Of a DNA stretch of 64,000 bases, positions 3,363 through 46,693 are shown piece after piece. The stretch lies in contig NIVC01000511.1 of assembly GCA_002269645.1 (NCBI GenBank), forward strand, positions 156,023 to 220,022, read 5' to 3'. The DNA is from Macrostomum lignano. Its lineage: Eukaryota. The notes under the pieces were generated by a model. The model had not been told where the DNA came from and searched no databases. It worked only from the letters and a program-made list of their open reading frames with translations. The stretch's first letter is position 1, and the number at the start of each line of letters is the position of its first letter. The translations under genes were made by a program, and so were the position numbers.

Positions 3363-6346
3363 CTACCAGGGCGCGCACGGGTCCTTGCAGGTCTGGCGGT
3401 AGCTGTGGTACTCTCCCGTGTCCACCCGCATCAGAGCCGTGTAAGTTGTGAGCTTGTTGAGCACAGGAATCGAGCTCAGCACATTGAAGATCTCCTTGAA
3501 CCCCATGCTAGCCTGACCCTTGGCCATCATGCACTTGTTGCCGGGGGTTCGCCTGTCGTCAAGCACAAACGGTGGCTTCCAGTGATCGTAGTTGGTCTGC
3601 AGCAGGTACCAGGTGTGGTTGGCGGCCGCCGAGCGCTCCCACACGTCGATGGCGGCATCTCGGGACCGGGTGATGATGCAGCCCTTTTTATGGAGTGTGA
3701 TGGGGCAGCTCATGCAGAGCACAGTAGTATTGCTTGTGTCAGCCAAGTTAACAGTTAAGGCATAGACATAGGCGGAAAAAAGACAAGCAAGTTGATAATT
3801 CGGCCATAGACATCAGCACAAATCTGTTTTAAATTTGCAAAGGGATTCACTTGCATAAGCTGCTAAAGGTGCTTCCGTATTTCATCATCAGCTTTGTTAG
3901 TTCTCAACTTGGGCATGCAAAACGGAATGGTCCACTGGAGTTCTATGGCCAAGCGTTTGAATTAACTAGAGAAAGAAAGCCATATACATATAAAGAACGG
4001 TTTGAGCTTTTCACAGAGACAACAGGATGCTTTCATTTTCTATCGGTTAATCGATTTAAGCTCTAATGGGTCCAGAAATTTCAGTACGCGATCGACAGCG
4101 TATCGTCACCGCCTTGCACTACGTGGGCTGTTGATGAAGGGTATCAGTGCTTTTAAGAGTATCCAATTATTCTGTTCAACGCATTCGGTCAACATTGAAA
4201 CAAGCCGGCAGGTTTGGAAGCTGCCACTTAGCAGACTGATCATCTGGACCCTAACGGAAACAGGGTTTTTTATGGATGGCACAAATTTCCACCGTAGGGT
4301 ACGAAGATCCCAGAGAACCATTGGAACAGAACTTCAGCAAGAATCTTGAGGGAGTGACACATGCACAGTGGGGATTCATGTTACTCGAGCGAGAGGCTGC
4401 TGACAAGTGCGCTGGCTGGGAGTTGCGCTGCAACAGATTGTTTGAACCGTGTTTGCAGCGACATCTGTTTAAAAAGTTGACCTTTCGTAAATTTTGATGC
4501 TTTCGATTTGTGACTTAAAATATGCTTTATTGAATGCCAGTTTCTATTTTTTCTGTAAATAAAACTCAAACTGTTCCTCTTCTATTCTGTCTCATCGTTC
4601 CATATTGCGTGACAAATTGAGTTATCATGGCTTACTTTCTCGAGTTAATTCAAACGCTTGGCCATAGTAGAACTCTAATGGGCCATTCCGTGTTGCATGC
4701 CCACTGTTCCACATGGCGCGACAAAAGTTATACCAACCAAATTGCCCATGGAGCTTTGCTGTCAAATGTAATAGCTTGCGAGATATATCGTTGCCATTGA
4801 CAACCTGTGCGGTACGTTTATCATTCTTTCATAAACTTTCTTATTCAAAAAGACGAATTTAAATAAACGGATTCAGCAGCCTCGAACCCATATCACGATA
4901 CAGGATAGATTGTGGCAACCAGTTAAACAATTAATTTCCAAACCTGCATTGTGCTGTTGCCACCCAAGATGAAGTAGGCCGGTGCCAGCATCTTGGTGCC
5001 CGTCAGCATCTGCTTGGCCTGGGCGTAGCTGTCGGCCGTCTCCATGACGCTGCGAGTCAGAAAGCCCATCCAGACGGCGTCCCTCTTGCCCAGAATCCAT
5101 TCGATAACGCCGATGTAGCCGCCGTCAGCGTTGAATCTCTCGTTCATGGTGAGGCTGAACCTGCCCGGCTTCAGGGCGGTCAGAATGCCAACATAGCCGG
5201 CAAAGTTGGTCGACATGAACACCGTCTGGCCGGACTTCTTGAACCGGATGTTCACAATGGCCGGACGGAGGTACTCGGTGATGAGCCAGGTGCTGTTGGC
5301 GAGGTCCCAGCCGAGGAACAGGCCGAAGTCCAGATTGCGAGCGTGGTAAAGGACTCCCTAATGGTCCGAGTGTTTCAAAATGCACTGAGTGATCATTAAA
5401 ATGTCTGTGAGCACCCAGAATTATATCCTATTTTTAGCATTGGATCTTAGAATGCAAATCATAGTGATTCGCAATAAAATTAGAGATTGGCATTATTTAT
5501 TCCAAGTTTTCATGTGAATTGACCTTAATTCGGCAGTAAAAGATCCTTTTGTGTGAAGCGAACACCAATGAAGTGCATTGTAGAAATTATATATATACTT
5601 GCGTTCAGTGAGAATGAAGCTCAACCTTGTCTCGCCTCGCCTCAGCTCCCCTTTGCCTCCTCGCCTCAGCTTCCTAGCTTGCCTCCTCACCTGCCCCCCT
5701 AGCTGGAGGGAAACCCATTTAAAACATTTGATAAAAGTATCTTTTGAAGCACACATATATTATATGCATATCAACGCTAGTTAACTACAAGTCCCATCAG
5801 AGGTGCTAGCTTGGGAACTTGAAAATTTTGGCACCGATCATGAAAAACTCTAAAACCCCTTCCCCAGAAACTGAAAGCAGAAAGCAGAAATGTGCTCACT
5901 TTCTGATCCTCAGCCACGATAGAAGTGCACACGGTGAAGATCTCGTAGAAGATGTTGTAGAGAGTGACCTCGCCCAGCGGAATGCCGGTCATATTGGCGA
6001 TGCCGACAATCTCGTCGCGGAAAGGCTGCGGCAGAGTGTGCGCCAGCGGCGTCAGGTCTTTGTCCACCAGATTGATGAGCAGTTCGGAGCCGGTCATGTT
6101 GCGCACGAAGATCCTGAACTGGGCGATGAGGGCGCGCAGCTGGGGCCCGCGGTGGGCCACCACGTTGCGCCAGCGGGTGAGGGGAGCCTCGTCAAGGTCG
6201 ACATCAACCCAATCGATCTCGGAATCGGCAGGCGGCGGGTAGGCGTCCGACCGGCACTGAGTCGGAATCTGAGCCTGGCTGTTCGCTGCCAGACAAGCCA
6301 GCAGCAGCAGCAGCAGCAGTGGCGTGAGGCGGCTTTGACAAGTCAT
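3363..6346 (-). CDS. ASAH1: Acid ceramidase (N-acylsphingosine amidohydrolase), copy A, 393 aa; exons 6346-5900, 5357-4944, 3683-3363
   Basis: Signal peptide ([12 protein letters not shown]), autocleavage/nucleophile motif [31 protein letters not shown] and DDRR motifs of the Ntn-hydrolase acid ceramidase family. All introns GT-AG, phase 0; length close to human ASAH1 (395 aa). Confidence 0.95.
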
Positions 6347-7240
6347 GGCTGCGAAACTCTGAGATAGAAACAGTACGCCAAACCTAAGTTTGCACCCGGG
6401 CTCTCTGGTGGGTTGGGTCAGTTTTATGCCACAACTATAACAGACAAGTTCGCTATACTGGCTGCGGCCACTTACCTGATAAAGCTAGAGAGATAAAACC
6501 AACTGCACCAGGCACGCACACGGTAAGAGAGAAAAAGTCACTTTGAAATATGACGCAAATTGCAGTTGATAAGGCATTATTATGGACCCTATATATGAAC
6601 TATTCTAACATAAATAAACTTATGATTGGCAAGGCCCATAGGCTGCTTTCATCTCTGCCAGGTGATGCTATCACTCTCGATAATGAGCGCGTACGCCTAA
6701 CTAAAACAGATGATAATCCGTCCATGAAGCACGAACTTTCACATCTGACCGTCGTACACAAAGTATGGACTGATTATTTAGACCAATTGATGTACAAAGT
6801 GTACATCTAGGTTTTCAAAGTAAGCTGCATGAAAGCACATGACACGCCTGTCAGCCACCGCGTCTGTTTTAGAGGTCACAAAACTGTGTTCCGGAGCATA
6901 TGCACTATTGGAAATGAGCAATTGCTCTCTTCTTGCTCAAATTTCACCGACGTTGTTCTTATTAAACAGGTTTTTGAGAGCATTGTAAGACAAGCAAAGT
7001 CAATGAGAAATCTGGTGCGAATTCGAACATTTTAGCACCGTTCTAATATCCATGTAAATTATTTTACTTGTAAGAACATAATGAACTTAAAAATACCTCG
7101 TTCATTTGATAAAAATTAGAGTAGAGTTTAGTATAGGTTTACTTGGTACACGTAAACTTGTTTTAGCGTCTTAATTAGTAGTAGTAGCTCGTCTGAAGTG
7201 CCATCAAATTGCACTACTGATGTACTTCTCTACGATGGAT

Positions 7241-7476
7241 TTCTCCAGGCGAGTGTTCAGCGACCACAATGAAGTTCGAGAAGCTGCATTGCAATGGGCA
7301 AGAGGCCTTGACGAAGATTGCTTGAAAAGAGAGGTTCAGCGACTCGTTGACCATTGCCAAGCTGTAATCAACGCAAGGGGAGATTACATTACCAACTAGT
7401 GCTGTTATCGTGTTTTCTGATAGTTCTGACTGGTTTTTTTAAATACAATCTCACGACTTTCCGGACAGCCGATGTA
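7241..7476 (+). mobile_element. Mariner transposase 3' remnant with probable right TIR
   Basis: Translates RRVFSDHNEVREAALQWARGLDEDCLKREVQRLVDHCQAVINARGDYITN*, matching the mariner C-terminal helix and the WxxCIxxxGdY pattern; followed by ...CGACTTTCCGGACAGCCGATGTA ending in TA. Confidence 0.7.
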
Positions 7477-8753
7477 CAAAGTGACGAAAAAATGCGCAAC
7501 AGGCCGTTTGTCTGCCTTGATGTCTAAGCGTATCAGGGCCATTGGTTAACTGTGAATCATGCGAATTTATGTATGCAATTAACACAGCACTTGTGTAAAA
7601 CTGTGATGAAATGTTGATTATACTTTTAAAACTTCATTTAAGTCCCAAAGGGGTGCCAAGTGTGCTAGTCATCACAATATACTAAATATGCCAACTATAC
7701 TAAATACGGTCTACTTATTACTGTTACCTGTACCTGCACACTTCCAGTATGAGAACTGGGAACTAAGCTTTTTGGGTGGAAGCGGGTTCGTTTCCCGACG
7801 CGGTAGCCAGACAAGTCCCTAAATGGCGCCAGATTAATAAGCTAGACCAAGACCACTAGACTATGGATACTGGCCTCTAAATCCTCTAAAACGGTTCAAA
7901 TGAAAAAGGCAAAAATCAAACGTTTCAGATAGGGTGTATTGCACATCCGTCAGTAAAGCAGCTACTCATATGAGCTCTACTCAACTGCCGACTGGCGCAG
8001 CGCCACTGTAAAAAAGGCAAACCAAATTTAATTGCCTCCTCTATGCTCACTAATTAATAAATTTCAGTAATCAAACAGAAACATGACAGATACTCGATGC
8101 TTGAGTAGAATTAGGTAAATCAAAGGCGTGTACTATTTTAGCCAGGTTATTAGCGAGCACTTGCACTTCAAAGACGGCAGGTAGGTGGGCGGGGAAAATA
8201 AAACAAAAAAAACGACTAGAAATTGAAAGTGATAAAATAGCAACACTAAAAAGGACTGAAAAAAATACTGCTGAATAGTCGAATAGAAAAGGACTGTAAA
8301 AAAATTGATGCAAATAGATGCCTTACTGTGAGAGGTGAGGAGAATAAAATAAATTTAGCACAGCAAGTACTAACTATACTACTACTGTCCACTGTCACTT
8401 CAAAAAGTAAGTAGAAAGCCATGCAGCAGGGTGTATCTAATTATCATCAAGCAAAAAATTTCGAGTGTGCACTCGTATCTGGGACAATGGGAGTACTCGG
8501 AAAGCTTTTGAGAAGGCATGCAATGCGTAGTAGCGCAATGTACTCGATATGCTTCACTCTGTCTTGGTTTTTAGTGTTGGAAAATATTTGACAAGCAAGA
8601 AATAAAGTATCGCTTTCAATACAAGAAATCAACTGTATAGAAGAGTCCAAATAAAGGTAAGCCCCTTATCCGTAGGTGCACAACTGCATGCCAACCAGTT
8701 AATTCTATCCTTTCATTCTGCAATAGATTTGTCAATAAATCAACCAACAGGTT

Positions 8754-9882
8754 TCACTTGTCGCCGGAGGCTCCGGCGGCCTTCAGCCGATCGCGGATGC
8801 AGTCCTCGGCCACTTCACTGATATCGTTGGCCTGAATCTCCACCACGCCGCGCAGCTTGTGCTTGATGGCGTCCTGAAAATTATAATCATGCGATTGTTA
8901 AGCTTCGTTTGAAAAAATATACCATAGCAACCCACATTGACTTACCACTTGGATTGTTCTACGATACTTTGCTTCAATCTAAATAGCGTAATATTTCCTA
9001 ATATACTTGCTACCGGGCCTAATGACCATAGATACAAGGACCAATTGCGATAGCAACCATGACTAATCACCATAGCAACCATGACGAATCACCATAGCAA
9101 CCATGACGAATCACCATAGCAACCATGACGAATCACCATAGCAACCATGACCAATCACCATAGCAACCATGACCGATCACTAAGCTAAATCAATTATTGA
9201 AGTGAGTGGTTGGCTGTACGTACTTGTACGGGGCAGTGATAGCGCTGGACCAAGTGAGCGAGGGAGAGAGAGAGGGAGGCAGATGTACACTGCCCCACAG
9301 CAACCATTACCAATTACGATAACAGCAACGACCAATTACCAAAGCAATCATGACGAACCACCATAGCAACCATCACTAATCACCATAGCAACCACGACCA
9401 ATCACCATAGCAACCATGACGAACCACCATAGCAACCATCACTAATCACCATAGCAACCACGACCAATCACCATAGCAACCAACCGGATCAATTTATTAA
9501 GAACAAAACTGATATTTGCTAAGCATAAGTGTTTTCAAGTATAAATCAAGAAGCTTAAGAGCTTAGCACTACAAACCTTGGATGAGGCGTAGATCATTTT
9601 GCAGCGAATTTTGCACACATCCGGTGCCCAGTGAATAAACAGCAGCTTCTCCCGCTTGCCGCCATCCTCCAGCGTGTAGGCGTAATCGTAAATAATGTAG
9701 CGACAATCGTTTCTAGGCAAGGAATCAACGAAATCTTCGTAGCTGCTCTCCTCAACAATGCGCTCCGTGGTGATGGTGGAATCGTTGACTATGTGAAAAA
9801 CAATGTAGCGATACCTGTGCCCGATCTTGATGGCTTTGAAGTGCTCTTCAACCTGAGGATCAACTGATACACCGGATGCCAT
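8754..9882 (-). CDS. CFL: Actin-depolymerising factor / cofilin, 141 aa; exons 9882-9577, 8873-8754
   Basis: MASGVSV N-terminus, DCRYIIYDY, KLLFIHWAPD, KMIYASSKDAIK and EIQAND motifs of ADF-H cofilins; phase-0 GT-AG intron. Confidence 0.95.
9050..9484. repeat. 22-bp minisatellite (CCATAGCAACCATGACGAATCA)n in two blocks (about 9050-9180 and 9340-9484) inside the cofilin intron
   Basis: About a dozen copies of CCATAGCAAC at roughly 22-bp spacing within each block. Confidence 0.9.
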
Positions 9883-10149
9883 GCCTACTTTTTATCGATG
9901 CTTTCGTTAGTCAGGAAATTTCAGTTCAGTGGATTCTTTGAAGTTTCTAATTGTCCCCTGACAACGGGCTCTACGTTGGCATAAAATTTTAGTTTTTAAT
10001 CATCTGTAATAAGTTATTTATATAGATATCCTATGATTGATTCTTTGAAGATTTCCTACAATTTCTTTCTTTCTCTAATCTGTAACTTTGTGTTCTTAAA
10101 TCAAGAACATTAGTATCCTAATTCTTTTAAGGTTAAATTGAAGCATTTA

Positions 10150-10504
10150 TTAATAGAGACAGGGGCTGTTTGCATTTAAGCGACATTGTCACACAACCGG
10201 CGAGAGGCATTACTGCCCATTCCGCCGACTCCCCTGAGCAGGCACACAAGCGCGCGGATACGTACGCAGTCATACGCACAGGCACACACTCACACAGGAG
10301 TGTACAGCGGCCCTAACTTTATTTATCGTTAGGCATGTACACTTCACTGTGCCATGGGGGTTGACCCTCAAGGGCGTTAATTGCACGAGCAGAGCCAAGC
10401 CGAGATTCCAATTTAGCCCCAAATTAATGTGACTGCACTGGGAATCGAGCCTGGGCCGCTGGCACACCAGAGCGCCGCGCTGGACCACTGGGCTACGGCC
10501 GCCC
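10150..10504 (-). mobile_element. tRNA-derived SINE (head 10504-10431)
   Basis: Minus strand GGGCGGCCGTAGCCCAGTGG...GGCTCGATTCCCAG has Pol III A-box and near-consensus B-box, but acceptor and T stems are degenerate. About 280 bp of body follows and ends in an AT-rich tail. Confidence 0.65.
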
Positions 10505-10904
10505 TAAGTTGAAAAATGAAAAATATTTTTTTATCTAACAACAAAATTGACATTCGAAATTCAGATGCGTAAAGTCCTATTTAGGACATTCATTAAGCTA
10601 ATTACCTAATTGTTACGATGAGTTTAACCAAGAATAAGATACTAATTTAAGAAAAAAGGAACAAGTCAAACAAAGCCAATGCGGTCAAACTGGAAAAAAA
10701 CACAAATCGCTTCGACTCTTTCAAGAGCCCACCGACACGAAGGAAATGCGTCATCCACAGTATTAAACGGTAGGTGGGAAATGAATGAATGCCTCAGCTT
10801 GTTTTTGTGCAGCATAGTATAAAATTTATTTTGCCTAATAAAAACCGCACTTCGCCAATATCCCAATCCCAATTCTTTCACAATGGCCGACCAAGGGACC
10901 ACCT

Positions 10905-11690
10905 CCATTTCTTCAGTGAGGGGGAATGGCTGACCAATTAAAGGACCCATCCATGGCTTCAGTGAGGGGGAATGGCTGACCAATTAAAGAACCCATCCAT
11001 GGCTTCAGTGAGGGGGAATGACTGACCAATTAAAGGACCCATCCATGGCTTCAGTGAGGGGGAATGGCTGACCAATTAAAGGACCCATCCATGGCTTCAG
11101 TGAGGGGGAATGACTGACCAATTAAAGGACCCATCCATGGCTTCAGTGAGGGGGAATGGCTGACCAATTAAAGGACCCATCCATGGCTTCAGTGAGGGGG
11201 AATGGCTGACCAATTAAAGGACCCATCCATGGCTTCAGTGAGGGGGAATGACTGACCAATTAAAGGACCCATCCATGGCTTCAGTGAGGGGGAATGGCTG
11301 ACCAATTAAAGAACCCATCCATGGCTTCAGTGAGTGGGGAATGGCTGACCAAAGGACCCATCCATGGCTTCAGTGAGTGGGGAATGACTAAAGGACCCAT
11401 CCATGGCTTCAGTGAGTGGGGAATGGCTGACCAAAGGACCCATCCATGGCTTCAGTGAGTGGGGAATGGCTGACCAATTAAAGGACCCATCCATGGCTTC
11501 AGTGAGGGGGAATGGCTGACCAATTAAAGAACCCATCCATGGCTTCAGTGAGTGGGGAATGATTAAAGAACCCATCCATGGCTTCAGTGAGGGGAAATGG
11601 CTGACCAATTAAAGAACCCATCCATGGCTTCAGTGAGTGGGGAATGACCAAAGGACCCATCCATGGCTTCAGTGAGGGGCAAGGAGCCAT
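10905..11690. repeat. 46-bp minisatellite (ATGGCTTCAGTGAGGGGGAATGGCTGACCAATTAAAGGACCCATCC)n between SNRPA1 and cofilin
   Basis: Direct tandem copies, shortened variants toward the right end. Confidence 0.95.
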
Positions 11691-11807
11691 CCATGGAGCA
11701 CCTAATTAAACATGCTGATGAGGCCAATGAATGAAACAATTGACTAATAGAAAAGCAGAGTACAGAACGCGTCACGGCAGACAGAGCAATGCAATAACAA
11801 CAGACAG

Positions 11808-13304
11808 TCAGGCCTGCTTCTCTCCGCCGCCTCCGCCGCCAGTCTTAGCAAAGCCGGCATAGTTTCCTGTAGTGAGCAGCCGGTTGAGCCGGTCCACCTC
11901 GTCCAGGGTGTTTGCCCGCCGGATCGCCTCGCGCACAGCCAGCAGGTCAGCGGAAGTCGGGCCGCCGGCTGCCGAGACAGGCGCCGACGCAGCGGCAGCA
12001 GCCGCCGGCACTGGCGCTCCGGGCGTGAAAGTCTTGGCAGGCTTGGACTTCAAGTTTGCCGCCGATTTATCGGCGACATCCCCGACGCCACCGGAGGTAA
12101 ACAGCGCGGCCGCTTGTCGACGTTCGGCGTCGGTGATGCGTCGAAAGTCGAGGAAGCGCAGACTGGGCAGCTTGTGCACCACGTGTAGGCGGTAGTTGCG
12201 CCGGCTGCAGACGGGGTTCTTCAGCAGGGACAGGAAGCGCAGCCGCTTCAGGGCGGTCAGGGGCTCCAAGTCCGCCAGCTCCTGCAGGCAGTTGTTGGTC
12301 AGCAGGAGGGTCGACAGGCGCGGCAGGCTGCTTGAAAGGCCGTCGCCAATGCGCATCACCTTGTTATTGTTCAGCATCAGGTTTGCCAGCCGGGGCAGGT
12401 GGGGGAAGCCGTCCAGCTTGCGGATCTGCCGATTCGTGGGGAAGAATGCGTTTGATAGGGCAGTAAGAATGGCAGTTTGTTAGGTGAAGAATGGTAGTTT
12501 GTTAGGGGAAGAATGGCAGTTTGTTAGGGGAAGAATGGCAGTTTGTTGAAGGAAGAATAGCAGTTTGTTAGAGAAAGAATGGCAGTTTGTTGAAGGAAGA
12601 ATGACAGTTTGTTAGAGGAAGAATGGCAGTTTGTTGAAGGAAGAATGGCAGTTTGTTAGAGAAAGAATGGCAGTTTGTTAGAGAAAGAATGGCAGTTTGT
12701 TGAAGGAAGAATGACAGTTTGTTAGAGGAAGAATGGCAGTTTGTTGAAGGAAGAATGGCAGTTGTTAGGGAAAGAATGGCAGTTTGTTAGGGAAAGAATG
12801 GCAGTTTGTTTGAGGAAGAATGGCAGTTTGTTAGGGAAAGAATAGCAGTTTGTTTGAGGAAGAATGGCAGTTTGTTAGGGAAAGAATAGCAGTTTGTTTA
12901 AGGAAGAATGGCAGTTTGTTAGGGAAAAAGTAGCAGTTTGTTAGGGAAAGAGTAGCAGTTTGTTAGAGTAAGAATGGCAGTTTGTTAGAGGAAGAGTCTG
13001 CCTCTCCGTTCCGGCAGTTTGTTAAGAGGAAGAGAAAGTGAGATTGGAGAGTACATGCATATCAGCTAGGCGAAACAACGAACAGAGAGTGATGCATCAA
13101 GCTGAGAGTACATCAATGATAGTGTTGCAATGGAAGCATTATATATACCTCATTATCTGTGAGGTCGATGGTATCAAACTGGTCCAGAGTAGCGCTGAGA
13201 TTCTCTAACAAAGCCACCTTGTATCCTCGCAGATCCAGTTCGCGGTCACCCAGAGGATTAGTGGTCTGCACCGAGTTCTGTATAAGCTCGGGCGTCAGCT
13301 TCAT
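11808..13304 (-). CDS. SNRPA1: U2 snRNP protein A' (LRR protein), 257 aa; exons 13304-13149, 12425-11808
   Basis: MKLTPELIQ...RELDLRGYK...ATLDQFDTIDLTDNE|IRKLDGFP, LRRs and LRRcap YRLHVVHKLPSLRFLDFRRI, C-terminal IRRANTLDEVDRLNRLLTTG; phase-0 GT-AG intron. Confidence 0.96.
12460..13030. repeat. 21-22 bp minisatellite (GAAGAATGGCAGTTTGTTAGGG)n filling the SNRPA1 intron
   Basis: Direct tandem copies starting about 35 nt from the acceptor. Confidence 0.95.
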
Positions 13305-13444
13305 GCTTGTTGGCAATGCAATCAGTGGACAAATCAATGAGCTGCAATCAGGAAATAATAGATTTAATAATTTAGCACAAGCATCCACTAGTTGTTATTT
13401 CGTCTAAATTCCTCCTTAAGTCTGGCTACTTCCCCAGTTCCCTT

Positions 13445-13975
13445 CGCTGCCTCTCCGCTCCCTCAGTCCTTGAATCTGCCTCTCCGCTCCCTCAGTCCTT
13501 GAACCTGCCTCTCCGCTCCCTCAGTCCTTGAATCTGCCTCTCCGCTCCCCCAGTCCTTGAATCTGCCTCTCCGCTCTCTCAGTCCTTGAATCTGCCTCTC
13601 CGCTCCCTCAGTCCTTGAATCTGCCTCTCCGCTCCCTCAGTCCTTGAATCTGACTCTCCGCTCCCTCAGTCCTTAAATCTGCCTCTCCGCTCCCTCAGTC
13701 CTTGAATCTGCCTCTCCGCTCCCTCAGTCCTTGAATCTGCCTCTCCGCTCCCTCAGTGTCCTTGGATCTGCCTCTCCGCTCCCTCAGTCCTTGAATCTGC
13801 CTCTCCACTCCCTCAGTGTCCTTGAATCTGCCTCTCCGCTCCCTCAGTCCTTGAATCTGCCTCTCCGCTCCCTCAGTCTTTGAATCTGCCTCTCCGCTTC
13901 CTCAGTCCTTGAATCTGCCTCTCCGCTCCCTCAGTGTCCTTGAATCTGCCTCTCCGCTCCCTAAGTCTTTGAATC
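13445..13975. repeat. 29-bp minisatellite (GAATCTGCCTCTCCGCTCCCTCAGTCCTT)n between ceramidase B and SNRPA1
   Basis: Direct tandem copies; occupies more than half of the intergenic gap. Confidence 0.95.
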
Positions 13976-14250
13976 AGCTTCCAAGTATTCAAAAATCAGG
14001 AACAACAAATTAGTTTATTATAGTGCCAAGCAAAGCTTCAATTGAGCTTACAAAATATTATATTTTTTAAAACCGATCAAAGACAACTGACTATTGCGAA
14101 AGATAAAAATATTGTAAAAGTGCATTAAAAACTCTGAATGCAGGAAGTTAGTGAAAATGGAATTTAAAAAACAAAATTGAAAGCCATGCACCAAAGCAGT
14201 TAAAATCTGCTTTATAAAACAAGCACAAATTGAGTCAGTTTAATGCCAAT

Positions 14251-17200
14251 CTACCAAATCGGACACGGGTCCTTGCAGGTCTGGCGGTAGCTGTGATACT
14301 CTCCCGTGTCCACCCGCATCAGAGCCGTGTAAGTTGTGAGCTTGTTGAGCACAGGAATCGAGCTCAGCACATTGAAGATCTCCTTGAACCCCATTCTAGC
14401 CTGACCCTTGGCCATCATGCACTTGTTGCCGGGGGTTCGCCTGTCGTCAAGCACAAACGGTGGCTTCCAGTGATCGTAGTTGGTCTGCAGCAGGTACCAG
14501 GTGTGGTTGGCGGCCGCCGAGCGCTCCCACACGTCGATGGCGGCATCTCGGGACCGGGTGATGACGCAGCCCTGCGCCAGTGCAGCCGGGAGGAGATTAG
14601 AATCATTTGATTGGTAGTAGATTTGGCTTGTCGGACAGTGTAATCTCGAGACTTTTAATTTTCGAATATCAAATATTTATAAAAATCTAAAGTTTAGACT
14701 TCAGGATTCTTAGACTCGATCTAATCTGCAGGGGTTGTGTGAGCAATTATAAAGTTCTATCTAACCTATGTAAAGCCGCAGCGACACTAGGGCGGTGACC
14801 ATGGCCCTCCCGGGTCATGGCTGTTTTGCAAGTCATCGTCACCTGCAGGGAAAAATCCGCAGTGAGGAATGTCCATTCTGCCTCTTAGGTGTTGAGAATG
14901 CGGAGTCCCGTCTTTACCCAGGACAGGCTCATCTACCTCGGCACAAACTCGGACCTCTTCGACGTTTTCAGGCCCGAGAATGTCTGCCAACTCGTCCGCT
15001 ACTTAAAAGCTACCGGGCGAGTGACCATCCACCTCCTGGACTCCCCGGAGGGGGACCGCGCTGCGGACACGGCAACACCAGCTGCCTGTGCTTGACGGGG
15101 TGTATCCGGGGCTTTCCCTGTTGTATCCGGATGCTCGGACCCCCCCCCTCTGCAGCTGAGTCAACCTAGCAGTGCATAGAGCCCCTTGGAAGCCTAGCTA
15201 GCCTTATCTGACAATAAAGTCACTAATAAAATCTGATACTCTTTCGATTATTCTAATTTTAGTAACTCACGAACCTGCATAGTGCTGTTGCCACCCAAGA
15301 TGAAGTAAGCCGGTGCCAGCATCTTGGTGCCCGTCAGCATCTGCTTGGCCTGGGCGTAGCTGTCGGCCGTCTCCATGACTCTGCGAGTCAGGAAGCCCAT
15401 CCAGATGGCGTCCCGCTTGCCCAGAATCCATTCGATGATGCCGGCAGTCGAGCTGCCATCGAGACTATTTCGAGAATTCACGGTGAGGCTGAACCTTCCC
15501 GGCTTCAGGGCGGTCAGAATGCCAACATAGCCGGCAAAGTGGGTGGACATGAACACCGTCTGGCCGGACTTCTTGAACCGGATGTTCACAATGGTTGGCC
15601 GAAGGTACTCGGTGACGAGCCAAGTCTTTTTGGCTTTGTCCCAGCCAAAGAAGAGACCGAAATCCAGATTGCGAGCGTGGTAAAGGACTCCCTGACAAGA
15701 TGGAAACGATGATCAATAACGAGTGCATGGTATAAGAATGAGAATTAATAATAAAAATACGCACAAAAAAGCTCCCGATCAGTTGTGGGAGGGAGGGGTA
15801 GCCGTTTTTTCGGGCCGCACTTTTTTGCTTCCTTGGCCTTTGTCGTCTCCAACAACAGTTGCTCTGCTTCAGCTTCTCCCTAATCTGCTCGGGCGTCTAC
15901 TGAACCAACTTCTCCAAGTCGGTGTATTTCTTGCTGGCTCTACTTTCATTTTGGATATCTGACGTGACTCTTCTCCAGCTTCTCCCTCTTCTTACGTTAT
16001 TATCATCTTTCGTCCTCCAGCTGCCAGCGGCATACAGCATAGGCACTGGCGCACAAATTCTTTGAGTCTGGTGAGACCTACAGACTGGCAGCAGCCCAAC
16101 CTTTAGCCACCAGACACGATTGTGATACAACAAGTGCCCTGATGGTCAGCGATCCAAGGCTGCAAGGCTGTCTTCCTCACGACTTCGTCAATAGAGAATA
16201 AGAATTAGTGAGGAAAAATCAGGCCCATTAGCTACACATAAATTCGGGCCACCCTTAAAAAAATCGGGCATTCGGGCCATTTCCGTCAATTGCGTCACCC
16301 CAGAGTTGTTGCAGATAACACAGGTAAAATACGAAAGAAGTGACTCTAGACGAGTCCGAAACGACGAGATGTCACGGAACGGCGCAAGTTACCAAAAAGG
16401 ATGGCCTAAGAGTCAATTTGAGATGCTTTATTGTCTGCGACTCTGAAACTACTCTGAGACGCTTCTATAATGACTCTGGGGCCATAGAGTATCGTTTTCA
16501 ATGGGTCTTAGAATTGAGAAGTCTCAGCAAGTCGATGCGGCGCACGCTGGCCTGCTGCGCGCCGCCTTCAACATCGGCGTCGAGCGAGTCACCAACGCGG
16601 CACTCTATCGCCGCACTGGCCTGCCACGTCCAAGTGATCTACTGCGCCGTCGGCGATTCCAGCTCGCAGGCCATCTCATCCGTGCCGAGTCGTACTGCCC
16701 ACAGCCGGTGCAGGTGCTGCTGTTCACGCTGCAGGCACCCTACCGGCGAGGTCAAGCGCGAACTCGGCGTTATGTCGACTGTCTGCTGGCTGACGCCGGC
16801 GCCCCGGACACTGCCGGTGGCGCGGCCTTTGTTCGCGCCCAAGCCATGAAGCGCGCCCTGCGACGCTGACTTTTGCCATCCTGACAGCGTATTTTGTTGT
16901 TTTTGTTGTGTTGTCAGACTTGAGCAGAAAGTCTCACTAAGAAGATAGTAAATATTATATCTACCTTGGAATCCTCAGCCAACACAGACGTGCACAGGTT
17001 AGTGGCTTCGTAGAAGATATTGTAAAGCAAAATCTCGCCCAATGGAATGCCAGTCACTGTGCTAATGCCAACCATTTCGTCCTGGTAGGGCTGCGGCACA
17101 GTGGGCGCAATAAGAGTCAGAGACCGCGCAACAAGGTTAAAGTACACACTCGAGCCGGTCAGTTGCCGAATGAAATTTTTAAACTGCAACAGTAGGTCGC

Positions 17201-17399
17201 GTATCTGGGATTGACGGCGCGCTACCACATGGCGCCAGCGAATAATTGGAGCTTCGTCTAAGCTGACATCAAACCACTCCACCTCTGAGCTGCTTGGGGG
17301 TGGGTAGGTATCGGAACGGCACTCTTGCGTGAACTGGGCTGGCACAAATGCCGAACAGAACAGAGCACAAAGCAGCATTAACCAAGATTCACTGCGCAT
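14251..17399 (-). CDS. ASAH1: Acid ceramidase, divergent copy B, 390 aa; exons 17399-16965, 15691-15275, 14571-14251
   Basis: Same three-exon structure and phases as copy A; signal peptide, [14 protein letters not shown] nucleophile motif, [13 protein letters not shown] and DDRR; open frame across all exons. Confidence 0.92.
14789..15170 (+). mobile_element. 5'-truncated non-LTR retrotransposon, C-terminal cysteine-knuckle region (I/R1-like group), in ceramidase B intron 2
   Basis: [34 protein letters not shown] then a frameshift to ...[17 protein letters not shown]; fits the LTGHG..F..H..G..CxxC..E..H and terminal FLxxTGR patterns of ORF2 ends. Confidence 0.7.
16295..16503 (-). mobile_element. 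Internally deleted copy of the MITE found at 24911-25311
   Basis: Reverse complement carries the CCCATTGAAAA terminus and shares GGCCCCAGAGTC, CAGAGTCGCAGACAATAAA, CCGTGACATCT and GTCTAGAGTCACTTC with 25100-25260. Confidence 0.7.
16510..16912 (+). mobile_element. 5'-truncated RTE-clade LINE 3' end in ceramidase B intron 1
   Basis: ORF 16501..16869 has LLRAAFNI...[32 protein letters not shown]...[14 protein letters not shown], typical of the RTE ORF C-terminus, then a short 3'UTR and a (TTG)-like tail. Confidence 0.8.
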
Positions 17400-21047: not shown

Positions 21048-21886
21048 AGTTTGTGGAAAATCTAACTTTCTTTTGTACAAATAAAATAATATTTTATTTG
21101 GCATTTCTTTTTATATAGAAATTGACATCTTTTATGTCAATTTTCAGCCTCTAACTAAAATGCTAAAATGCAATGGTCAAAAAAGTGATATGACTCTAGA
21201 CCTTGCCTTGCAATTGACAATGTTCAATGTGACAGACAAGTTGCAATCCTTGTTCAATTTTAGGATTGCTTTGGATAGGCAGTAGGCAGTGGATTGCTTT
21301 TGAAGAGGATTCCTCTATCAAATTCCTATGTGAGAGAAGTATTGGCAAGGTCATAACAGTAGTCTTCTTCTGGTAGTATGATATCCTGCTGCCTATTCTA
21401 CTCAAAGAAAGTGCCACAGTGACTGGTCATTTGTACTGAAGTGTTTGCTTGCCCTAGGTGCTGCAGTTCCTCAATCAAGAGTGGCCAAATAGTAGATACC
21501 ATGCCATTTTCCTGTACCATAACAATGTTCTAGCTTACCAAGCCAGGGTGACATAGGAGTTTCTGGTATCAACTCAACTGAGTCTGCTGCCATACCCAGC
21601 CTATTTGCCCAACCTTGCTCCAGCTGACTTCTTCTTTCCAAAGATCAAGAACAATCTCAAGGGAAAGTGCTTTGACTCACGCAAGGAGCTTGGAGAGGCC
21701 TTGAAAGCAAAGCTGGAAGCTGTCACTTAGGTGGAATTAAGGGACTGTTTTGTAGCATGGTTCTATAGGATGGAGAAATGCATCAATCTATCTAGAAACT
21801 ATGTTGAAAAGTCTCATTAAGTGGGGATAAATGCAAGTAATTTTTTTAAGTGGAAGCATATTCAGAAGTGTCTTTTTCCACAAACT
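21048..21886 (+). mobile_element. Degenerate mariner element with both TIR remnants
   Basis: AGTTTGTGGAAAA (21048-21060) and TTTTCCACAAACT (21874-21886) are inverted. Interior translates with stops as KVITVVFFW...FLYHNN...PYPAYLPNLAPADFFFPKIKNNLKGKCF...RMEKCINLSRNYVEK (degenerate HDNA, YSPDLAP and KCI..G.YVEK motifs). Confidence 0.85.
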
Positions 21887-25426: not shown

Positions 25427-28400
25427 TTAAAAGTCAAGCGGTTTGGCTAGCGAGTCCAGCAGATTCCTGTGCGTCAGCTCTATGCCCCGGCCGCTGCCGC
25501 TGGCGCCGCCCGTTGAAGCGGCTGTCTCCAGCAGCTCGGACTCGATGTCCGCCTTGGATTTGCCCTCGAACGTTGCCAAGCGTCGCACTAGAATTTCCCG
25601 ATCTCTTAGCAGATTCGCGATTCGCTCGCGCATGTGGCGCATGTCCCGGTTGAACTGGCAGCTCTTGGCCCTGATGGCCTGGTCTACGCTCTCCAGCTGT
25701 GAGCTGATGCTGCACTCCAGGTCTGTCTGCACAGCGATATTGTTCAATAGCATCATTGCGGCTGCGTCCTGCTGCTGTTGCTGATGATGCTGATGGTCGT
25801 GCAGTCGGGTCTCCTCCGAGTGATCGGCTCCCAGCGACATGAGCAGACTGTCCCTGTCGCTGGTGTACTTTTGAAGCCTGCGCGAGCGATTTATGTTGAT
25901 GGAAATTTTGAAATTATGCGATTCACGCTGTAGCGATGGTATGGCTTATGCGAAAGCATGGCTTAAGTATTGGAACTTCTTTAAGGCAGCTAAGTTTAAT
26001 TTTTTGGGTTCCAATTATATCCAACAGCCCCAAAAGCCAATCGAGAAGAAATCTCAACTTAATCAGAGAATGGCATCAAGTCTCACAGCTTAATCAGAGA
26101 AAGGCATCAAGTCTCACAGCTTAATCAGAGAAAGGCATCAAGTCTCACAGCTTAATCAGAGAATGGCACTGAAATCTCACAGCTTGATGGGGAATGGCAC
26201 TGAAATCTCACAGCTTAATCAGAGAATGGCATCAAGTCTCACAGCTTAATCAGAGAATGGCACTGAAATCTCACAGCTTAGTCAGAGAATGGCACTGAAA
26301 TCTCACAGCTTAGTCAGAGAATGGCACTGAAATCTCACAGCTTAGTCAGAGAATGGCACTGAAATCTCACAGCTTAGTCAGAGAATGGCACTGAAATCTC
26401 ACAGCTTAGTCAGAGAATGGCACTGAAATCTCACAGCTTAGTCAGAGAATGGCACTGAAATCTCACAGCTTAGTCAGAGAATGGCACTGAAATCTCACAG
26501 CTTAGTCAGAGAATGGCACTGAAATCTCACAGCTTAGTCAGAGAATGGCATCGAACCTCAGCTGCATGAGTGTCACACAGAAGTCCCACAGTTTAGTGAT
26601 AGAATTGCACCAAAATGTGGGCCACAAATTCGCACCCAAGTCTCGGCACGTGTCTTTAATTGCACTTATCATCTCGAATTATCCGGCCAAAGCAGCCGCT
26701 TTGGCTTTGACTTGGCCGAAAGAAAATTTCTAGCCGCGGCGCTGAACTGCTCGAAACTTACAGATTTCAATTTTCCCCTCGAACTTCCCTTCTCCCCCTG
26801 TCCAGTACTTTCCCAGCTTCGCAGTCGCAGCCTCATCAGAGACCATTAGGAAACCGGGCAATCCAATTCCACGAATCGCTACTGGGAGCTTGCTGAATGT
26901 GGGATTTACTTCCTCAGCAGCCTGGCTGAAAAGTCAATTCCACTTTTATTTGTGTTTTTCTGTGACAAAATTCTAGCCAGGGTTTTTGAACCGTTTTTTA
27001 TTTCACATTAGTGATGTTTCGCTGACAAATTAGTATCTATATACGTAAATGGGAAGAGGGAAGGGAGGGGAGATGAGAAACGGAGGCATAGGAGATGGGT
27101 GAGAAATAGTAGATGAGAAACGGGGGGAGCAATGTGTAGAAGGAGGGAGAGATTTGTAGAAGGGAGAGGAGGTGTGTAGAAGAAGAGAGAAGAGATTTGC
27201 AGAAGGGGAGAGATGTGTAGAAGAAGGAAGAGAAGATGTGCAGAAGAAGGGAGAAGAGATGTGCAGAAGAAGGGAGAGGAGATGTGCAGAAGAAGGGAGA
27301 AGAGATGTGCAGAACAAGGGAGAGGAGATGTGCAGAACAAGGGAGAGATGTGTAGAAGAAGGGAGAGGAGATGTGCAGAACAAGGGAGAGATGTGTAGAA
27401 GAAGGGAGAGGAGATGTGCAGAACAAGGGAGAGGAGATGTGCAGAACAAGGGAGAGGAGATGTGCAGAAGAAGGGAGAGGAGATGTGCCGAACAAGGGAG
27501 AGGGGATGTGCAGAACAAGGGAGAGATGTGCAGAAGAAGGGAGAGTAGATGTGCAGAAGGGAGAGGAGATGTGCAGAACAAGGGAGAGATGTGTAGAAGA
27601 AGGGAGAGGAGATATGCAGAAGGGAGAAGATGTGTAGAGGGAGGGAGAGGAGATGTGAGATGGGGAGAGAGTTGACGGTAAGAGAAGTGGTTAAGTATGA
27701 GAAGTGGAGAAAGTGATAAATGAGACATCCAAGAGGTTACAGTGCAGGGCATAACAGAGGCATAAGAGACGAAGTGTAGAGAGGCTGCAGAGGTATCGAT
27801 ATGCTTTGCAGTGTAGTGTTTGGAAAGCAGCAGCTCCTGAACATAAGAGTAGAAATTCTCTGACTCTGAAGAGGCCCATCAATGGCCAAGTTGCACTCGC
27901 CTAGCTGGCGCTGCCCGTCAACTTGACAGGCTATAATTCGAAAGAAAACACATTGCTGTCACAACAACTGCAGCCACTCACCTGAGCGCCACGGGCAGCG
28001 CGTCGCGATTGCACCGCCGCCTCTCCTGCGCCTCCCGGTAGCGGACCAGGTGGCGGTAGACCCTCTGCAAGGCGTTTGGGGAAAGAGTTGCTAGGGCCCT
28101 GGCCATTCGGGGAAAACTAGCTCGAGAACTAACTCATATACACTTGTGCCAAGAAGGGAGCAGAAATCACCCTGGCAGAGTTCCCTAATGGAATCGCCTA
28201 ATGGAATCATCTAATAGAATTTTCTAGTGTAACCCCCATTTGGAATTTCCCTAGTAAAATCCCCTAGTGGAACCCCCTTGTAGAACCCCCTAGTGGAACC
28301 CCCTTGTAGAATCCCCTAGTGGAGCCCCCTAGTGGAGCCCCCTTGTAGAACCCCCTAGTGGAACCCCCTTGTAGAATCCCCTAGTGGAGCCCCCTAGTGG

Positions 28401-31400
28401 AGCCCCCTTGTAGAACCCCCTAGTGGAACCCCCTTGTAGAATCCCCTAGTGGAGCCCCCTAGTGGAGCCCCCTTGTAGAACCCCCTAGTGGAACCCCCCT
28501 TGTAGAATCCCCTAGTGGAACCCCCTAGTGGAGCCCCCTTGTAGAATCCCCTAGTGGAACCCCCTTGTAGAACCCCCTAGTGGAACCCCCTTGTAGAATC
28601 CCCTAGTGGAACCCCCTAGTGGAGCCCCCTTGTAGAACCCCCTAGTGGAACCCCCTTGTAGAATCCCCTAGTGGAGCCCCCTAGTGGAGCCCCCTTGTAG
28701 AACCCCCTAGTGGAACCCCCTTGTAGAATCCCCTAGTGGAGCCCCCTAGTGGAGCCCCCTTGTAGAACCCCCTAGTGGAACCCCCCTTGTAGAATCCCCT
28801 AGTGGAGCCCCCTAGTGGAGCCCCCTTGTAGAACCCCCTAGTGGAACCCCCTTGTAGAATCCCCTAGTGGAGCCCCTAGTGGAGCCCCCTTGTAGAACCC
28901 CCTAGTGGAACCCCCCTTGTAGAATCCCCTAGTGGAACCCCCTAGTGGAGCCCCCTTGTAGAATCCCCTAGTGGAACCCCCTTGTAGAACCCCCTAGTGG
29001 AACCCCCTTGTAGAATCCCCTAGTGGAACCCCCTAGTGGAGCCCCCTTGTAGAACCCCCTAGTGGAACCCCCTTGTAGAATCCCCTAGTGGAACCCCCTA
29101 GTGGAGCCCCCTTGTAGAACCCCCTAGTGGAACCCCCTTGTAGAATCCCCTAGTGGAACCCCCTAGTGGAGCCCCCTTGTAGAATCCCTAGTGGAACCCC
29201 CTTGTAGAACCCCCTAGTGGAACCCCCCTTGTAGAATCCCCTAGTGGAACCCCCTAGTGGAGCCCCCTTGTAGAATCCCCTAGTGGAACCGTTTAGTGGA
29301 ACCCGCTAGTGTAACCCGCTAGTGAAACCCCCTTGTAGAATCCCGGCCCTAGTGGAACGCCCTTGTAGAATCCCGGCCCTAGTGGAACGCCCTTGTAGAA
29401 TCCCGGCCCTAGTGGAACCGTTTAGTGGAACCCCCTAGTGGAATCCCCCTTGTAGAACCCTCTACTGGAATTCCACGGAATCCCCCTAGCGGAATTCCCC
29501 AAGGGAATCTCCAGAGAGCCGTAGGCAAGATAGACATTTTCATTCCGCGTCTTTGTCATGAAGCTATCTAAATCGTGTTTTTACCGTTTCACCGTGTTTC
29601 AAGAGTCAAATCAAGGGTGTCTGCTTATTTAGAAAAATCCTCTCTACATAAACAATGCTGAGGTTCGAGGATCCACATGGCAGATAGAAGGAAGTACGTG
29701 GTGGAAAATTGTTAACTGAAAAAAATCCGTTGGCTAATAGATCATTTATAGGAAATCGGAATTGAGCTATTAGCTATGAAAATGCATCAGGGATCCGGGG
29801 AAATGTTGAGTTTTATAAGCATTGGCTGAAGTTTTTGGACCGTTTTTCATCGTTTTTTTTGCTTTTCCAAATTCAAATTTTAATTATTAGCTATTCGAGC
29901 CTTGATTTTTCCACATATTCTACAATATCTTAGTTTTTGTATTCATTTTTTATTGTAATATTCTGTTACACTACTACATTACATGTAGCAAAATGTCAGA
30001 AAGTTAAACATAGGGCTGCTACAACACAATTAGATTGCATGCTGTCACAGATATCTTCAATCACCCCTTCGGATCATGCAATTATTTTCCAGGACTGGTC
30101 CGCCAACTTGCTGCTTCACCGGACCATCGCTGCTCAATGTGGCTCTCCCGCTCCCTCTCCCTAGCTCCCTCTCCCTCTCCCGCTCCCTCTCCCTAGCTCC
30201 CTCTCCCGCTCCCTCTCCCTAGCTCCCTCTCCCTAGCTCCCTCTCCCGCTCCCTCTCCCTCTCCCTAGCTCCCTCTTCCTCTCCCGCTCCCTCTCCCTCT
30301 CCCGCTCCCTCTCCCGCTCCCTCTCCCGCTCCCTCTCCCGCTCCCTCTCCCGCTCCCTCTCCCGCTCCCTCTCCCGCTCCCTCTCCCGCTCCCTCTCCCG
30401 CTCCCTCTCCCTCTCCCTCTCCCGCTCCCTCTCCCTCTCCCGCTCCCTCTCCCTCTCCCTCTCCGCTCCCTCTCCCTAGCTCCCTCTTCCTCTCCCGCTC
30501 CCTCTCCCTCTCCCGCTCCCTCTCCCGCTGCCTCTCCCTAGCTCCCTCTCCCGCTCCCTCTCCCACTCCCTCTCCCGCTCCCTTTCCCGCTCCCTCTCCC
30601 TAGCTCCCTCTTCCTCTCCCGCTCCCTCTCCCTCTCCCGCTCCCTCTCCCGCTCCCTCTCCCTAGCTCTCTCTCCCGCTCCCTCTCCCTCTCCCTCTCCC
30701 GCTCCCTCTCCCTAGCTCCCTCTCCCTAGCTCCCTCTCCCGCTCCCTCTCCCTAGCTCCCTCTCCCTCTCCCGCTCCCTCTCCCTAGCTCCCTCTCCCTA
30801 GCTCCCTCTCCCGCTCCCTCTCCCTAGCTCCCTCTCCCTCTCCCGCTCCCGCTCCCTAGCTCCCTCTCCCTAGCTCCCTCTCCCTCTCCCGCTCCCTAGC
30901 TCCCTCTCTCGCTCCCTCTCCCTTTACCTCTCCCTCTCCCTCTCTCGCTCCCTCTCCCTCTCCCTCTCCCGCTCCCTCTCCCTAGCTCCCTCTCCCGCTC
31001 CCTCTCCCTCTCCCGCTCCCTCTCCCTAGCTCCCTCTCCCGCTCCCTCTCCCGCTCCCTCTCCCTCTCCCGCTCCCTAGCTCCCTCTCCCTAGCTCCCTC
31101 TCTCGCTCCTTCTTCCTTTACCTCTCCCTTTCCCTCTCGCTCTCCTTAGCTACCTCTCCATCTCCCTCTCTTTTTTCCTCTCCCTAGTCCCCACCCTCCC
31201 TCTTCCACTCTCTTTCCGTAGCCCTATCTATCGCTCGATTGGTTTATCTCTGACGCATCTAAGAAAATCCACCAACCAAAATAAAATGGATAAAGAAAGT
31301 AAATTTTGACTCCAAATTTGGCAACATCTCCCAACCCCCCCCCCCCAGGGAAAGCGCATGCAAAGTGCTAAATCAGGATGACTCAGAGCTGGCCCTCCAC

Positions 31401-45903: not shown

Positions 45904-46693
<790 letters not shown>

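Follow-up and report, generated by a model that had tools for sequence, protein, structure and literature searches.

The genes analyzed here lie in a stretch of 64,000 nucleotides (nt) from the flatworm Macrostomum lignano (GenBank assembly GCA_002269645.1, contig NIVC01000511.1, positions 156,023 to 220,022 of the forward strand), referred to below as the window and numbered from its first letter. Two genes, A and B, each composed of three exons, are found there in the same orientation, with B upstream of A. An earlier note, made from the letters of the window alone, had described them as acid ceramidases that are nearly identical in some exon tracts and strongly diverged in others, and had attributed this to an old duplication followed by recent gene conversion confined to exons. 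The per-exon trees with orthologs give conflicting topologies and bear this interpretation out. An old duplication with recurrent, ongoing interlocus gene conversion between A and B is the best explanation of the locus, and we assign it a probability of about 0.88.

Gene Models and Family

Both reading frames are intact and encode proteins of 393 (A) and 390 (B) amino acids (aa). The introns of the two genes are all of the GT-AG type, in phase 0 and at homologous positions, and the product of gene A is 100% identical to the GenBank protein PAA81828.1. The two Pfam domains CBAH (PF02275) and NAAA-beta (PF15508) are recognized in both products above their gathering cut-offs of 20.4 and 27 bits, respectively, with scores of 96.5 bits (A) and 81.7 bits (B) for CBAH and of 38.6 bits (A) and 31.3 bits (B) for NAAA-beta. 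A shares 57–58% identity with molluscan and vertebrate acid ceramidase (ASAH1), and the best PDB matches are acid ceramidase structures. Judged by these similarities, both genes are predicted to encode N-terminal nucleophile (Ntn) hydrolases of the acid ceramidase (ASAH1-like)/NAAA family.

Mosaic Divergence along the Coding Sequence

The divergence between A and B was determined from a codon alignment of the two coding sequences (CDS), and the synonymous (dS) and nonsynonymous (dN) divergence of each segment was obtained by the Nei-Gojobori method. Exon 1, which the earlier note had called diverged throughout, differs at 39% of its nucleotides, with a dS of ~1.5–1.6 and a dN of 0.37–0.39. The 306-nt core of exon 3 contains just the three differences in the window that had been counted before, at exon positions 7, 177, and 276 (dS 0.015), and the last four codons of the exon, which had been set apart from it, differ at 5 of 12 nucleotides. 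The alternation noticed within exon 2 (dS 0.30 overall) is also found in the alignment, where three near-identical blocks (alignment columns 1–29, 98–211, and 257–418, the last being block c) show 0–3.8% difference and are separated by two divergent patches. Patch 1 (columns 30–97) differs at 24% of its nucleotides and patch 2 (columns 212–256) at ~45%, with an insertion or deletion (indel) of 3 nt. The dN/dS ratio is ~0.24 in exon 1 and patch 1, and it is below 1 in both patches of exon 2.

When the A region was compared with the whole window by blastn, it matched exon 2 of B together with 2–3 nt of splice consensus, exon 3 with 2 additional nt, and exon 1 weakly (67.6%), and the search detected no A/B similarity in introns, untranslated regions (UTRs), or flanks. 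Similarly, no A intron resembles a B intron in any assembly copy of the locus. The earlier description, including the end of identity at the splice acceptor and in the stop region and the unrelated introns, is confirmed in full. The near-identity itself is beyond chance. The longest run of identical nucleotides in A and B measures 169 nt, whereas 20,000 shuffles of the codon columns never yielded more than 94 nt, and codons that specify the same amino acid in both genes differ in 38 of 78 cases in exon 1 versus 1 of 93 in the exon 3 core (Fisher p = 5e-15).

Trees of the Separate Segments

Two A-type RNA contigs, with a dS to A of ~0.6–1.3, served as outgroups: X (392 aa, Logan assemblies SRR28338163-5) and Y (389 aa, Logan assembly SRR30276804). 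In the nucleotide trees of exon 1 and of the two exon 2 patches, A groups with X and Y to the exclusion of B with 100% bootstrap support. Conversely, in the trees of the exon 3 core and of exon 2 block c, all A and B sequences of M. lignano form one clade, again with 100% support, in which the paralogs are intermixed, and the monophyly of A in exon 3 receives 0% support. The protein trees, which comprised A, B, X, Y, eleven further outgroups, and a third M. lignano paralog (C), conflict in the same way, with 99.7% support for (A,X,Y) in exon 1 and 95% for (A,B) in exon 3. Since well-supported trees of different segments contradict each other, gene conversion is supported. The trees place the A/B duplication before the split of M. 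lignano from the nearest species with transcripts (X and Y), and on this sequence evidence the duplication would be the older event. No B-type protein outside M. lignano was found in the protein collection with full-length B or its N-terminal 178 aa as the query, and the per-exon trees thus include A-type outgroups only.

Homeologous Copies of the Locus

The protein cluster of A comprises products of both types, A and B, encoded on three contigs. Accordingly, the block consisting of B, a leucine-rich repeat (LRR) gene, a cofilin gene, and A recurs in three further contig regions, one on NIVC01000512.1, one opening NIVC01000511.1, and one closing NIVC01005020.1. Their collinearity with the window extends for at least 20 kb, with 95–99% identity. 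The start of NIVC01000511.1 and the end of NIVC01005020.1 represent one locus, as 12 kb of sequence shows just 6 mismatches and 44 indels between them, and the distinct copies are therefore three: the window, NIVC01000512.1, and the start of NIVC01000511.1. M. lignano is a neopolyploid with the subgenomes S, L1, and L2, and its homeologs diverge by single-nucleotide polymorphisms at 1.1% of CDS and 2.2% of genome-wide positions (PMC10733133). The three copies of the locus match these three homeologous subgenomes. The window's own contig thus contains the whole locus a second time, at its start (NIVC01000511.1 positions 1–22876) and in inverted orientation, which suggests either an overlap left unmerged or a chimeric scaffold. 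Exons of the copies at contig ends contain single-base indels, namely two deletions for B and one insertion for A, that would break the reading frame; they are probably long-read errors close to the ends of contigs rather than signs of pseudogenes.

All three homeologous copies carry the same A/B mosaic, including the same fixed B-specific tail and patches. Over the three homeologs, fixed differences between A and B amount to 177 in exon 1, to none in the exon 3 core, and to 5 in the last four codons, where they occupy exon 3 positions 309, 310, and 313–315 in every copy. Exon 2 contributes 40 fixed differences, all but 3 of them inside the two patches and 1 in block c. The LRR and cofilin genes between B and A are intact in all copies. 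The homeologous introns of the same gene are 91–100% identical (divergence ~0.6–9%). They vary in length, intron 1 of A measuring 542, 541, and 350 nt and intron 2 of A 1260, 1721, and 1759 nt in the three homeologs, in agreement with the reported dominance of indels in the divergence of the M. lignano subgenomes (PMC10733133). Intron 2 of A also contains an inverted repeat of ~75 nt with 88% identity between its arms (3910–3983 and 4627–4703), which flank ~640 nt; the repeat is kept in the homeologous intron copies. It looks like a foldback insertion or one of the kind known as miniature inverted-repeat transposable elements.

Several database entries derive from this locus. The UniProt entries A0A1I8H5K7, A0A1I8IK45, and A0A1I8IHK5 are models of it, and those of 920 and 1173 aa span B, LRR, cofilin, and A. 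Among the UniProt models made on the earlier, independent ML2 assembly, both types of exon 3 are represented, the B type with the ending CPI and the A type with CAPW. The GenBank model PAA81815.1 (227 aa; NIVC01000511.1 672–12876) extends over 12 kb across LRR and cofilin and joins exon 2 of B to exons 2–3 of A. The join between B and A lies inside a tract that is identical in both genes, and we rejected this model as a real B/A recombinant gene and regard it as an annotation artefact. Short reads and transcript assemblies cannot tell A from B over 60% of the length of the genes, and it is because of this that one GenBank model and several UniProt models of the locus are chimeric or fused.

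Direction and Timing of the Exchange

In the exon 3 core, A and B differ from each other by 1.0% and from X by 13.4% and 14.4%, respectively. In exon 1, the divergence from X is 37% for B and 21% for A. The GC content at third codon positions (GC3) of the converted blocks is 0.82–0.87 in both genes, compared with 0.77–0.96 in the A-only segments and 0.50–0.70 in the B-only segments. For exon 1, the GC3 values are 0.59 in B and 0.79 in A, and for the exon 3 core they are 0.82 and 0.84. The shared tracts are of the A type, because they lie near X in both genes and have an A-like GC3, so A has mostly been the donor.

Across the copies, the exon 3 divergence between A and B is 0.7–1.6%. That between homeologs is 0–1.3% in the same exon and 0.6–9% in introns, next to the published 1.1% in CDS and 2.2% genome-wide (PMC10733133). 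As A and B differ no more than homeologs do, the exchange and the genome duplication are equally recent. At exon 3 sites 27 and 111, both alleles are present in both paralogs and all four combinations occur among the six sequences. Exon 2 site 278 shows a further polymorphism common to both paralogs, with the A and B states swapped in the copy of the window. At exon 3 sites 27, 29, and 111, the A gene of the window has the states of the window's B gene, and the other two copies of A have the state of outgroup Y. In the most plausible reading, a recent B-to-A tract of 85–169 nt, confined to this copy, covers 3657–3573 (outer limits 3676–3508), and the exchange has therefore been bidirectional. 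Conversion continued after the whole-genome duplication (WGD) and is still ongoing. The tracts of exon 2 block c and of exon 3 differ in age, with an A/B difference of 1.9–3.8% in the former versus ~1% in the latter. An excess of differences among the A homeologs in the converted blocks was considered as evidence on the rate of exchange and dropped, since it does not exceed the divergence of the introns; only site patterns were used.

One part of exon 2 stands out. In columns 98–146 (5260–5212 in A, 15594–15546 in B), the two genes are identical, yet 6 amino acids and 13 of 49 nt are changed in comparison with both outgroups. In the flanks, only 12 of 160 nt differ from X (p = 9e-4). This excess hints at a B-to-A origin of the segment, but the A-like codon usage does not support it, and such an origin is no more than a candidate.

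What the Unconverted Islands Encode

To map residues, B was aligned to 5u81_A (numbering offset +11) and the structure paper (PMC5915598) was consulted. The Cys nucleophile and the equivalents of Arg159, Asp162, Asn320, and Arg333 are all present in B and unchanged in A. Apart from the nucleophile, these residues belong to converted blocks. Exon 1 encodes the α subunit through the Cys nucleophile (Cys143 equivalent), with the end of helix α5, and the α subunits of A and B are only 58% identical. The residues in front of the cleavage site are EIFTVC in A and EATNLC in B, those of B being less hydrophobic.

Patch 1 corresponds to the L4-6 loop (Trp169, Ile171, Trp176), which in the known structure is part of a hydrophobic surface and is needed for activation (PMC5915598). 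This loop reads DLANS in A and is lysine-rich in B (DKAKK), with Lys at the position of Ile171. Patch 2 starts at the equivalent of Glu225, a residue that contacts the ceramide head group and helps to form the oxyanion hole (PMC5915598). Glu is retained there in A (MNERF), whereas B has Ser (VNSRN) and one more residue. As far as the alignment can tell, the islands fall on those parts of the enzyme that serve substrate entry and head-group binding, which suggests that B may have diverged in function and that its distinctive parts resist homogenization.

The third acid ceramidase paralog, C, was observed on NIVC01000393.1 as two copies 31 kb apart (239–248 kb and 208–216 kb). It is a distant relative, 52–57% identical, and has a single intron at a position unlike those of the A/B introns. 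Like B, it carries Ser in place of Glu225 and an insertion of one residue. Paralog C was rejected as the donor of patch 2 of B: the proteins are alike (NSR...AG), but the nucleotide identity is 0.36.

Coordinates and Surroundings

The coordinates of the features are collected in Table 1. Those of the two genes in the spacer between B and A were converted from the gene calls of the record (window position = 16359 − record position). The window as a whole (1–64000) is dense in minisatellite and microsatellite arrays, with 50 rows of Tandem Repeats Finder scoring at least 150, periods of 3–178 bp, and up to 263 copies. Examples are found at 1766–2436, 28249–29470, 30143–31185, 43588–44833, 45904–46693, 59282–60543, and 60965–62174. 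The arrays within 26–37 kb of the window show a strong strand composition skew.

Table 1. Features of the acid ceramidase locus, in window coordinates unless a contig is named
Feature	Position	Strand	Remarks
Gene A exon 1	5900..6346	minus	codons 1-149; signal peptide, whole α subunit, Cys nucleophile; unconverted
Gene A intron 1	5358..5899	minus	542 nt; unrelated to B intron 1
Gene A exon 2	4944..5357	minus	codons 150-287; mosaic
Gene A exon 2, converted blocks	5357-5329, 5260-5148, 5105-4944	minus
Gene A exon 2, divergence islands	5328-5261, 5147-5106	minus	L4-6 loop and Glu225 segment, respectively
Gene A intron 2	3684..4943	minus	1260 nt; unrelated to B intron 2
Gene A exon 3 core	3378..3683	minus	306 nt; homogenized with B
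Gene A last 4 codons and stop (CAPW*)	3363..3377	minus	unconverted
Gene B exon 1	16965..17399	minus	codons 1-145; diverged α subunit, Cys nucleophile kept; unconverted
Gene B intron 1	15692..16964	minus	1273 nt; unrelated to A intron 1
Gene B exon 2	15275..15691	minus	mosaic
Gene B exon 2, converted blocks	15691-15663, 15594-15482, 15436-15275	minus
Gene B exon 2, islands	15662-15595, 15481-15437	minus	L4-6 loop and Glu225 position (1 extra codon), respectively
Gene B intron 2	14572..15274	minus	703 nt; unrelated to A intron 2
Gene B exon 3 core	14266..14571	minus	306 nt; A type, homogenized with A
Gene B last 4 codons and stop (CPIW*)	14251..14265	minus	B-specific
Spacer between B and A	6347..14250	minus	7.9 kb; uninvolved in exchange, no paralogous matches
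LRR_9 (U2A'-like) gene in the spacer	~13340-11808
Cofilin/actin-depolymerizing factor (ADF) gene in the spacer	~9882-8754
Frame-breaking indels in contig-end copies	NIVC01000511.1 622-1037, 1738-2057; NIVC01005020.1 fetched stretch 21469-21883

Discussion

The A/B pair combines conflicting trees, identical runs longer than chance allows, unrelated noncoding surroundings, and polymorphisms shared between the paralogs, with all four gametes present. We propose that A and B, 7.9 kb apart and with two intron positions in common, arose long ago by duplication of one acid ceramidase gene at the DNA level, and that the 3′ two thirds of their CDS have been repeatedly homogenized by interlocus (ectopic, nonallelic) gene conversion. 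The homogenized parts would be the three blocks of exon 2 and exon 3 without its last four codons. Heteroduplex formation and repair synthesis presumably need homology at both sides, and conversion would then act only in blocks that are still alike and thereby keep those blocks alike. The tracts probably stop at the exon borders because the introns, UTRs, and flanks offer no homology.

The segments that have escaped conversion, namely exon 1, the L4-6 loop, and the Glu225 segment, may be either too diverged to pair or protected by selection. Protection by selection, with B functionally different, is possible, although the odds lean somewhat the other way. The dN/dS is ~0.24 in exon 1 and patch 1, and the divergence of the islands alone could block pairing. 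The proposal that some of the exon-exact tracts were templated by RNA or complementary DNA (cDNA) in the flatworm germ line, or, more modestly, that the islands are kept by selection as the specificity determinants of a neofunctionalized paralog, appears improbable.

The earlier note had offered two explanations for tracts that end at exon borders, the loss of intron homology and a cDNA-templated event. The former is favored, and the latter is not needed. If a spliced transcript had served as the repair template, identity would indeed be expected to end at exon borders, and it does start within 0–3 nt of three of them, at both ends of exon 2 and at the 5′ end of exon 3. However, a spliced template reaching across the exon 2–3 junction would have deleted intron 2, and this intron, which lies between two converted blocks, is kept in A and B in all copies. 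No intron has thus been lost at the spanned junction, and the tract ends are not confined to features of the transcript: four lie inside exon 2, and a fifth lies 15 nt before the stop codon, where a cDNA would run on into the 3′ UTR. Moreover, the tracts of block c and exon 3 are of different age, and the limit of homology accounts for all of the ends. Templating by cDNA is therefore unlikely. A single unequal crossover or exon shuffling event, which would make B a chimera of an old 5′ part and a recent copy of the 3′ part of A, is even less probable. It would suit the 5′-to-3′ polarity from a diverged exon 1 to an identical exon 3, but such a crossover would have imported intron 2 and the 3′ UTR of A, both of which are B-specific in B. 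Both the alternation of blocks in exon 2 and the last four codons, which are specific to B, are at odds with a single junction, and LRR and cofilin remain intact between the genes in all copies.

Just as improbable is a recent duplication without any conversion, in which A and B would be young and exon 1 and the patches would have diverged fast under positive selection. The rapid evolution of the B protein (dN 0.39) and the failure to find a B ortholog in any other species would agree with it. However, the synonymous sites of exon 1 are saturated, with nearly half of the codons for shared amino acids differing, the introns, UTRs, and flanks have nothing in common, the dN/dS of exon 1 (~0.24) is not above 1, and B falls outside (A,X,Y) in that exon. 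An artefact of assembly or polishing was also considered for this neopolyploid genome. Under that reading, the sequence of exon 3 and, in part, of exon 2 in one gene would be a consensus, collapsed or chimeric, built from the other gene's reads. In the Mlig_3_7 assembly, 93% of the read pairs are multi-locus and 36% of the length lies in chimeric scaffolds (PMC10733133), and the window's own contig holds the second, inverted copy of the locus. Nevertheless, three separately assembled copies, whose introns differ by 1–9%, have the same mosaic with the same B-specific tail and patches, and the ML2-based models hold both types of exon 3 ending. Reads that are 39% diverged cannot be mis-mapped, and an artefact could erase only a few residual differences. 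A collapsed or chimeric assembly is thus very unlikely to be the source of the mosaic, a judgment made on copies known from assembled contigs alone.

Several points weigh against an old duplication with recurrent gene conversion. With no B ortholog outside M. lignano, the duplication is dated through the position of exon 1 of B in the trees, and B is a gene that evolves fast (dN 0.39 to A, compared with 0.11 from A to X) and whose exon 1 is saturated in dS. In exon 2, columns 98–146 are unusually far from X, with A-like GC3 and codon usage, and the identical block at the start of the exon, at 29 nt, is short for a conversion tract standing by itself. Furthermore, all A/B copies were compared as assembled sequence, and short-read polishing could have erased a few true differences between A and B.

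For practical purposes, trees or dS values calculated from the whole CDS of the A/B pair would misdate the duplication. The three subgenomes of M. lignano provide a natural replicate for the frequency of conversion between paralogs after polyploidization. The islands, in turn, indicate where in acid ceramidase the interaction of a paralog with its substrate or with the membrane may have changed. Knowledge of gene conversion itself is unchanged by this case. Concerted evolution restricted to coding sequence after the loss of noncoding homology is a documented outcome for old duplicates (PMC3924837, PMC3966223), and the A/B pair is a well-resolved, fresh example of a known process that will not surprise the specialist. 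In the literature searched, no report was found of the acid ceramidase family or the flatworm phylum in connection with coding-restricted gene conversion.

The closest parallels are the WGD duplicates of yeast and the paralogs of Caenorhabditis (PMC3924837, PMC3966223). There, as in A and B, old duplicates lying close together on one chromosome have lost their noncoding homology, coding blocks are homogenized including their synonymous sites, and sequences group by species in the converted parts and by gene elsewhere. Unlike in those cases, the exchange between A and B can be traced in three neopolyploid homeologs, through shared polymorphism and one copy-specific tract. Sharp-edged diverged segments within homogenized paralogs are also known from exon 5 of the primate red/green opsins, from GOT1 of Tigriopus californicus, and from fog-2/ftr-1 of C. 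elegans (PMC3924837, PMC3728101, PMC3966223). The islands coincide with important residues in these systems, as they do here with the L4-6 loop, Glu225, and the α subunit. In contrast to these systems, the A/B patches have a dN/dS below 1, and the islands may be too diverged or too interrupted by indels to pair. Finally, A and B resemble human ASAH1 (5U7Z, 5U81, 5U84; PMC5915598) and NAAA in combining the NAAA-beta and CBAH domains with a Cys nucleophile at the α/β junction. B departs from ASAH1 in its Ser at Glu225, its lysine-rich L4-6 loop with Lys at Ile171, and its less hydrophobic residues before the cleavage site.

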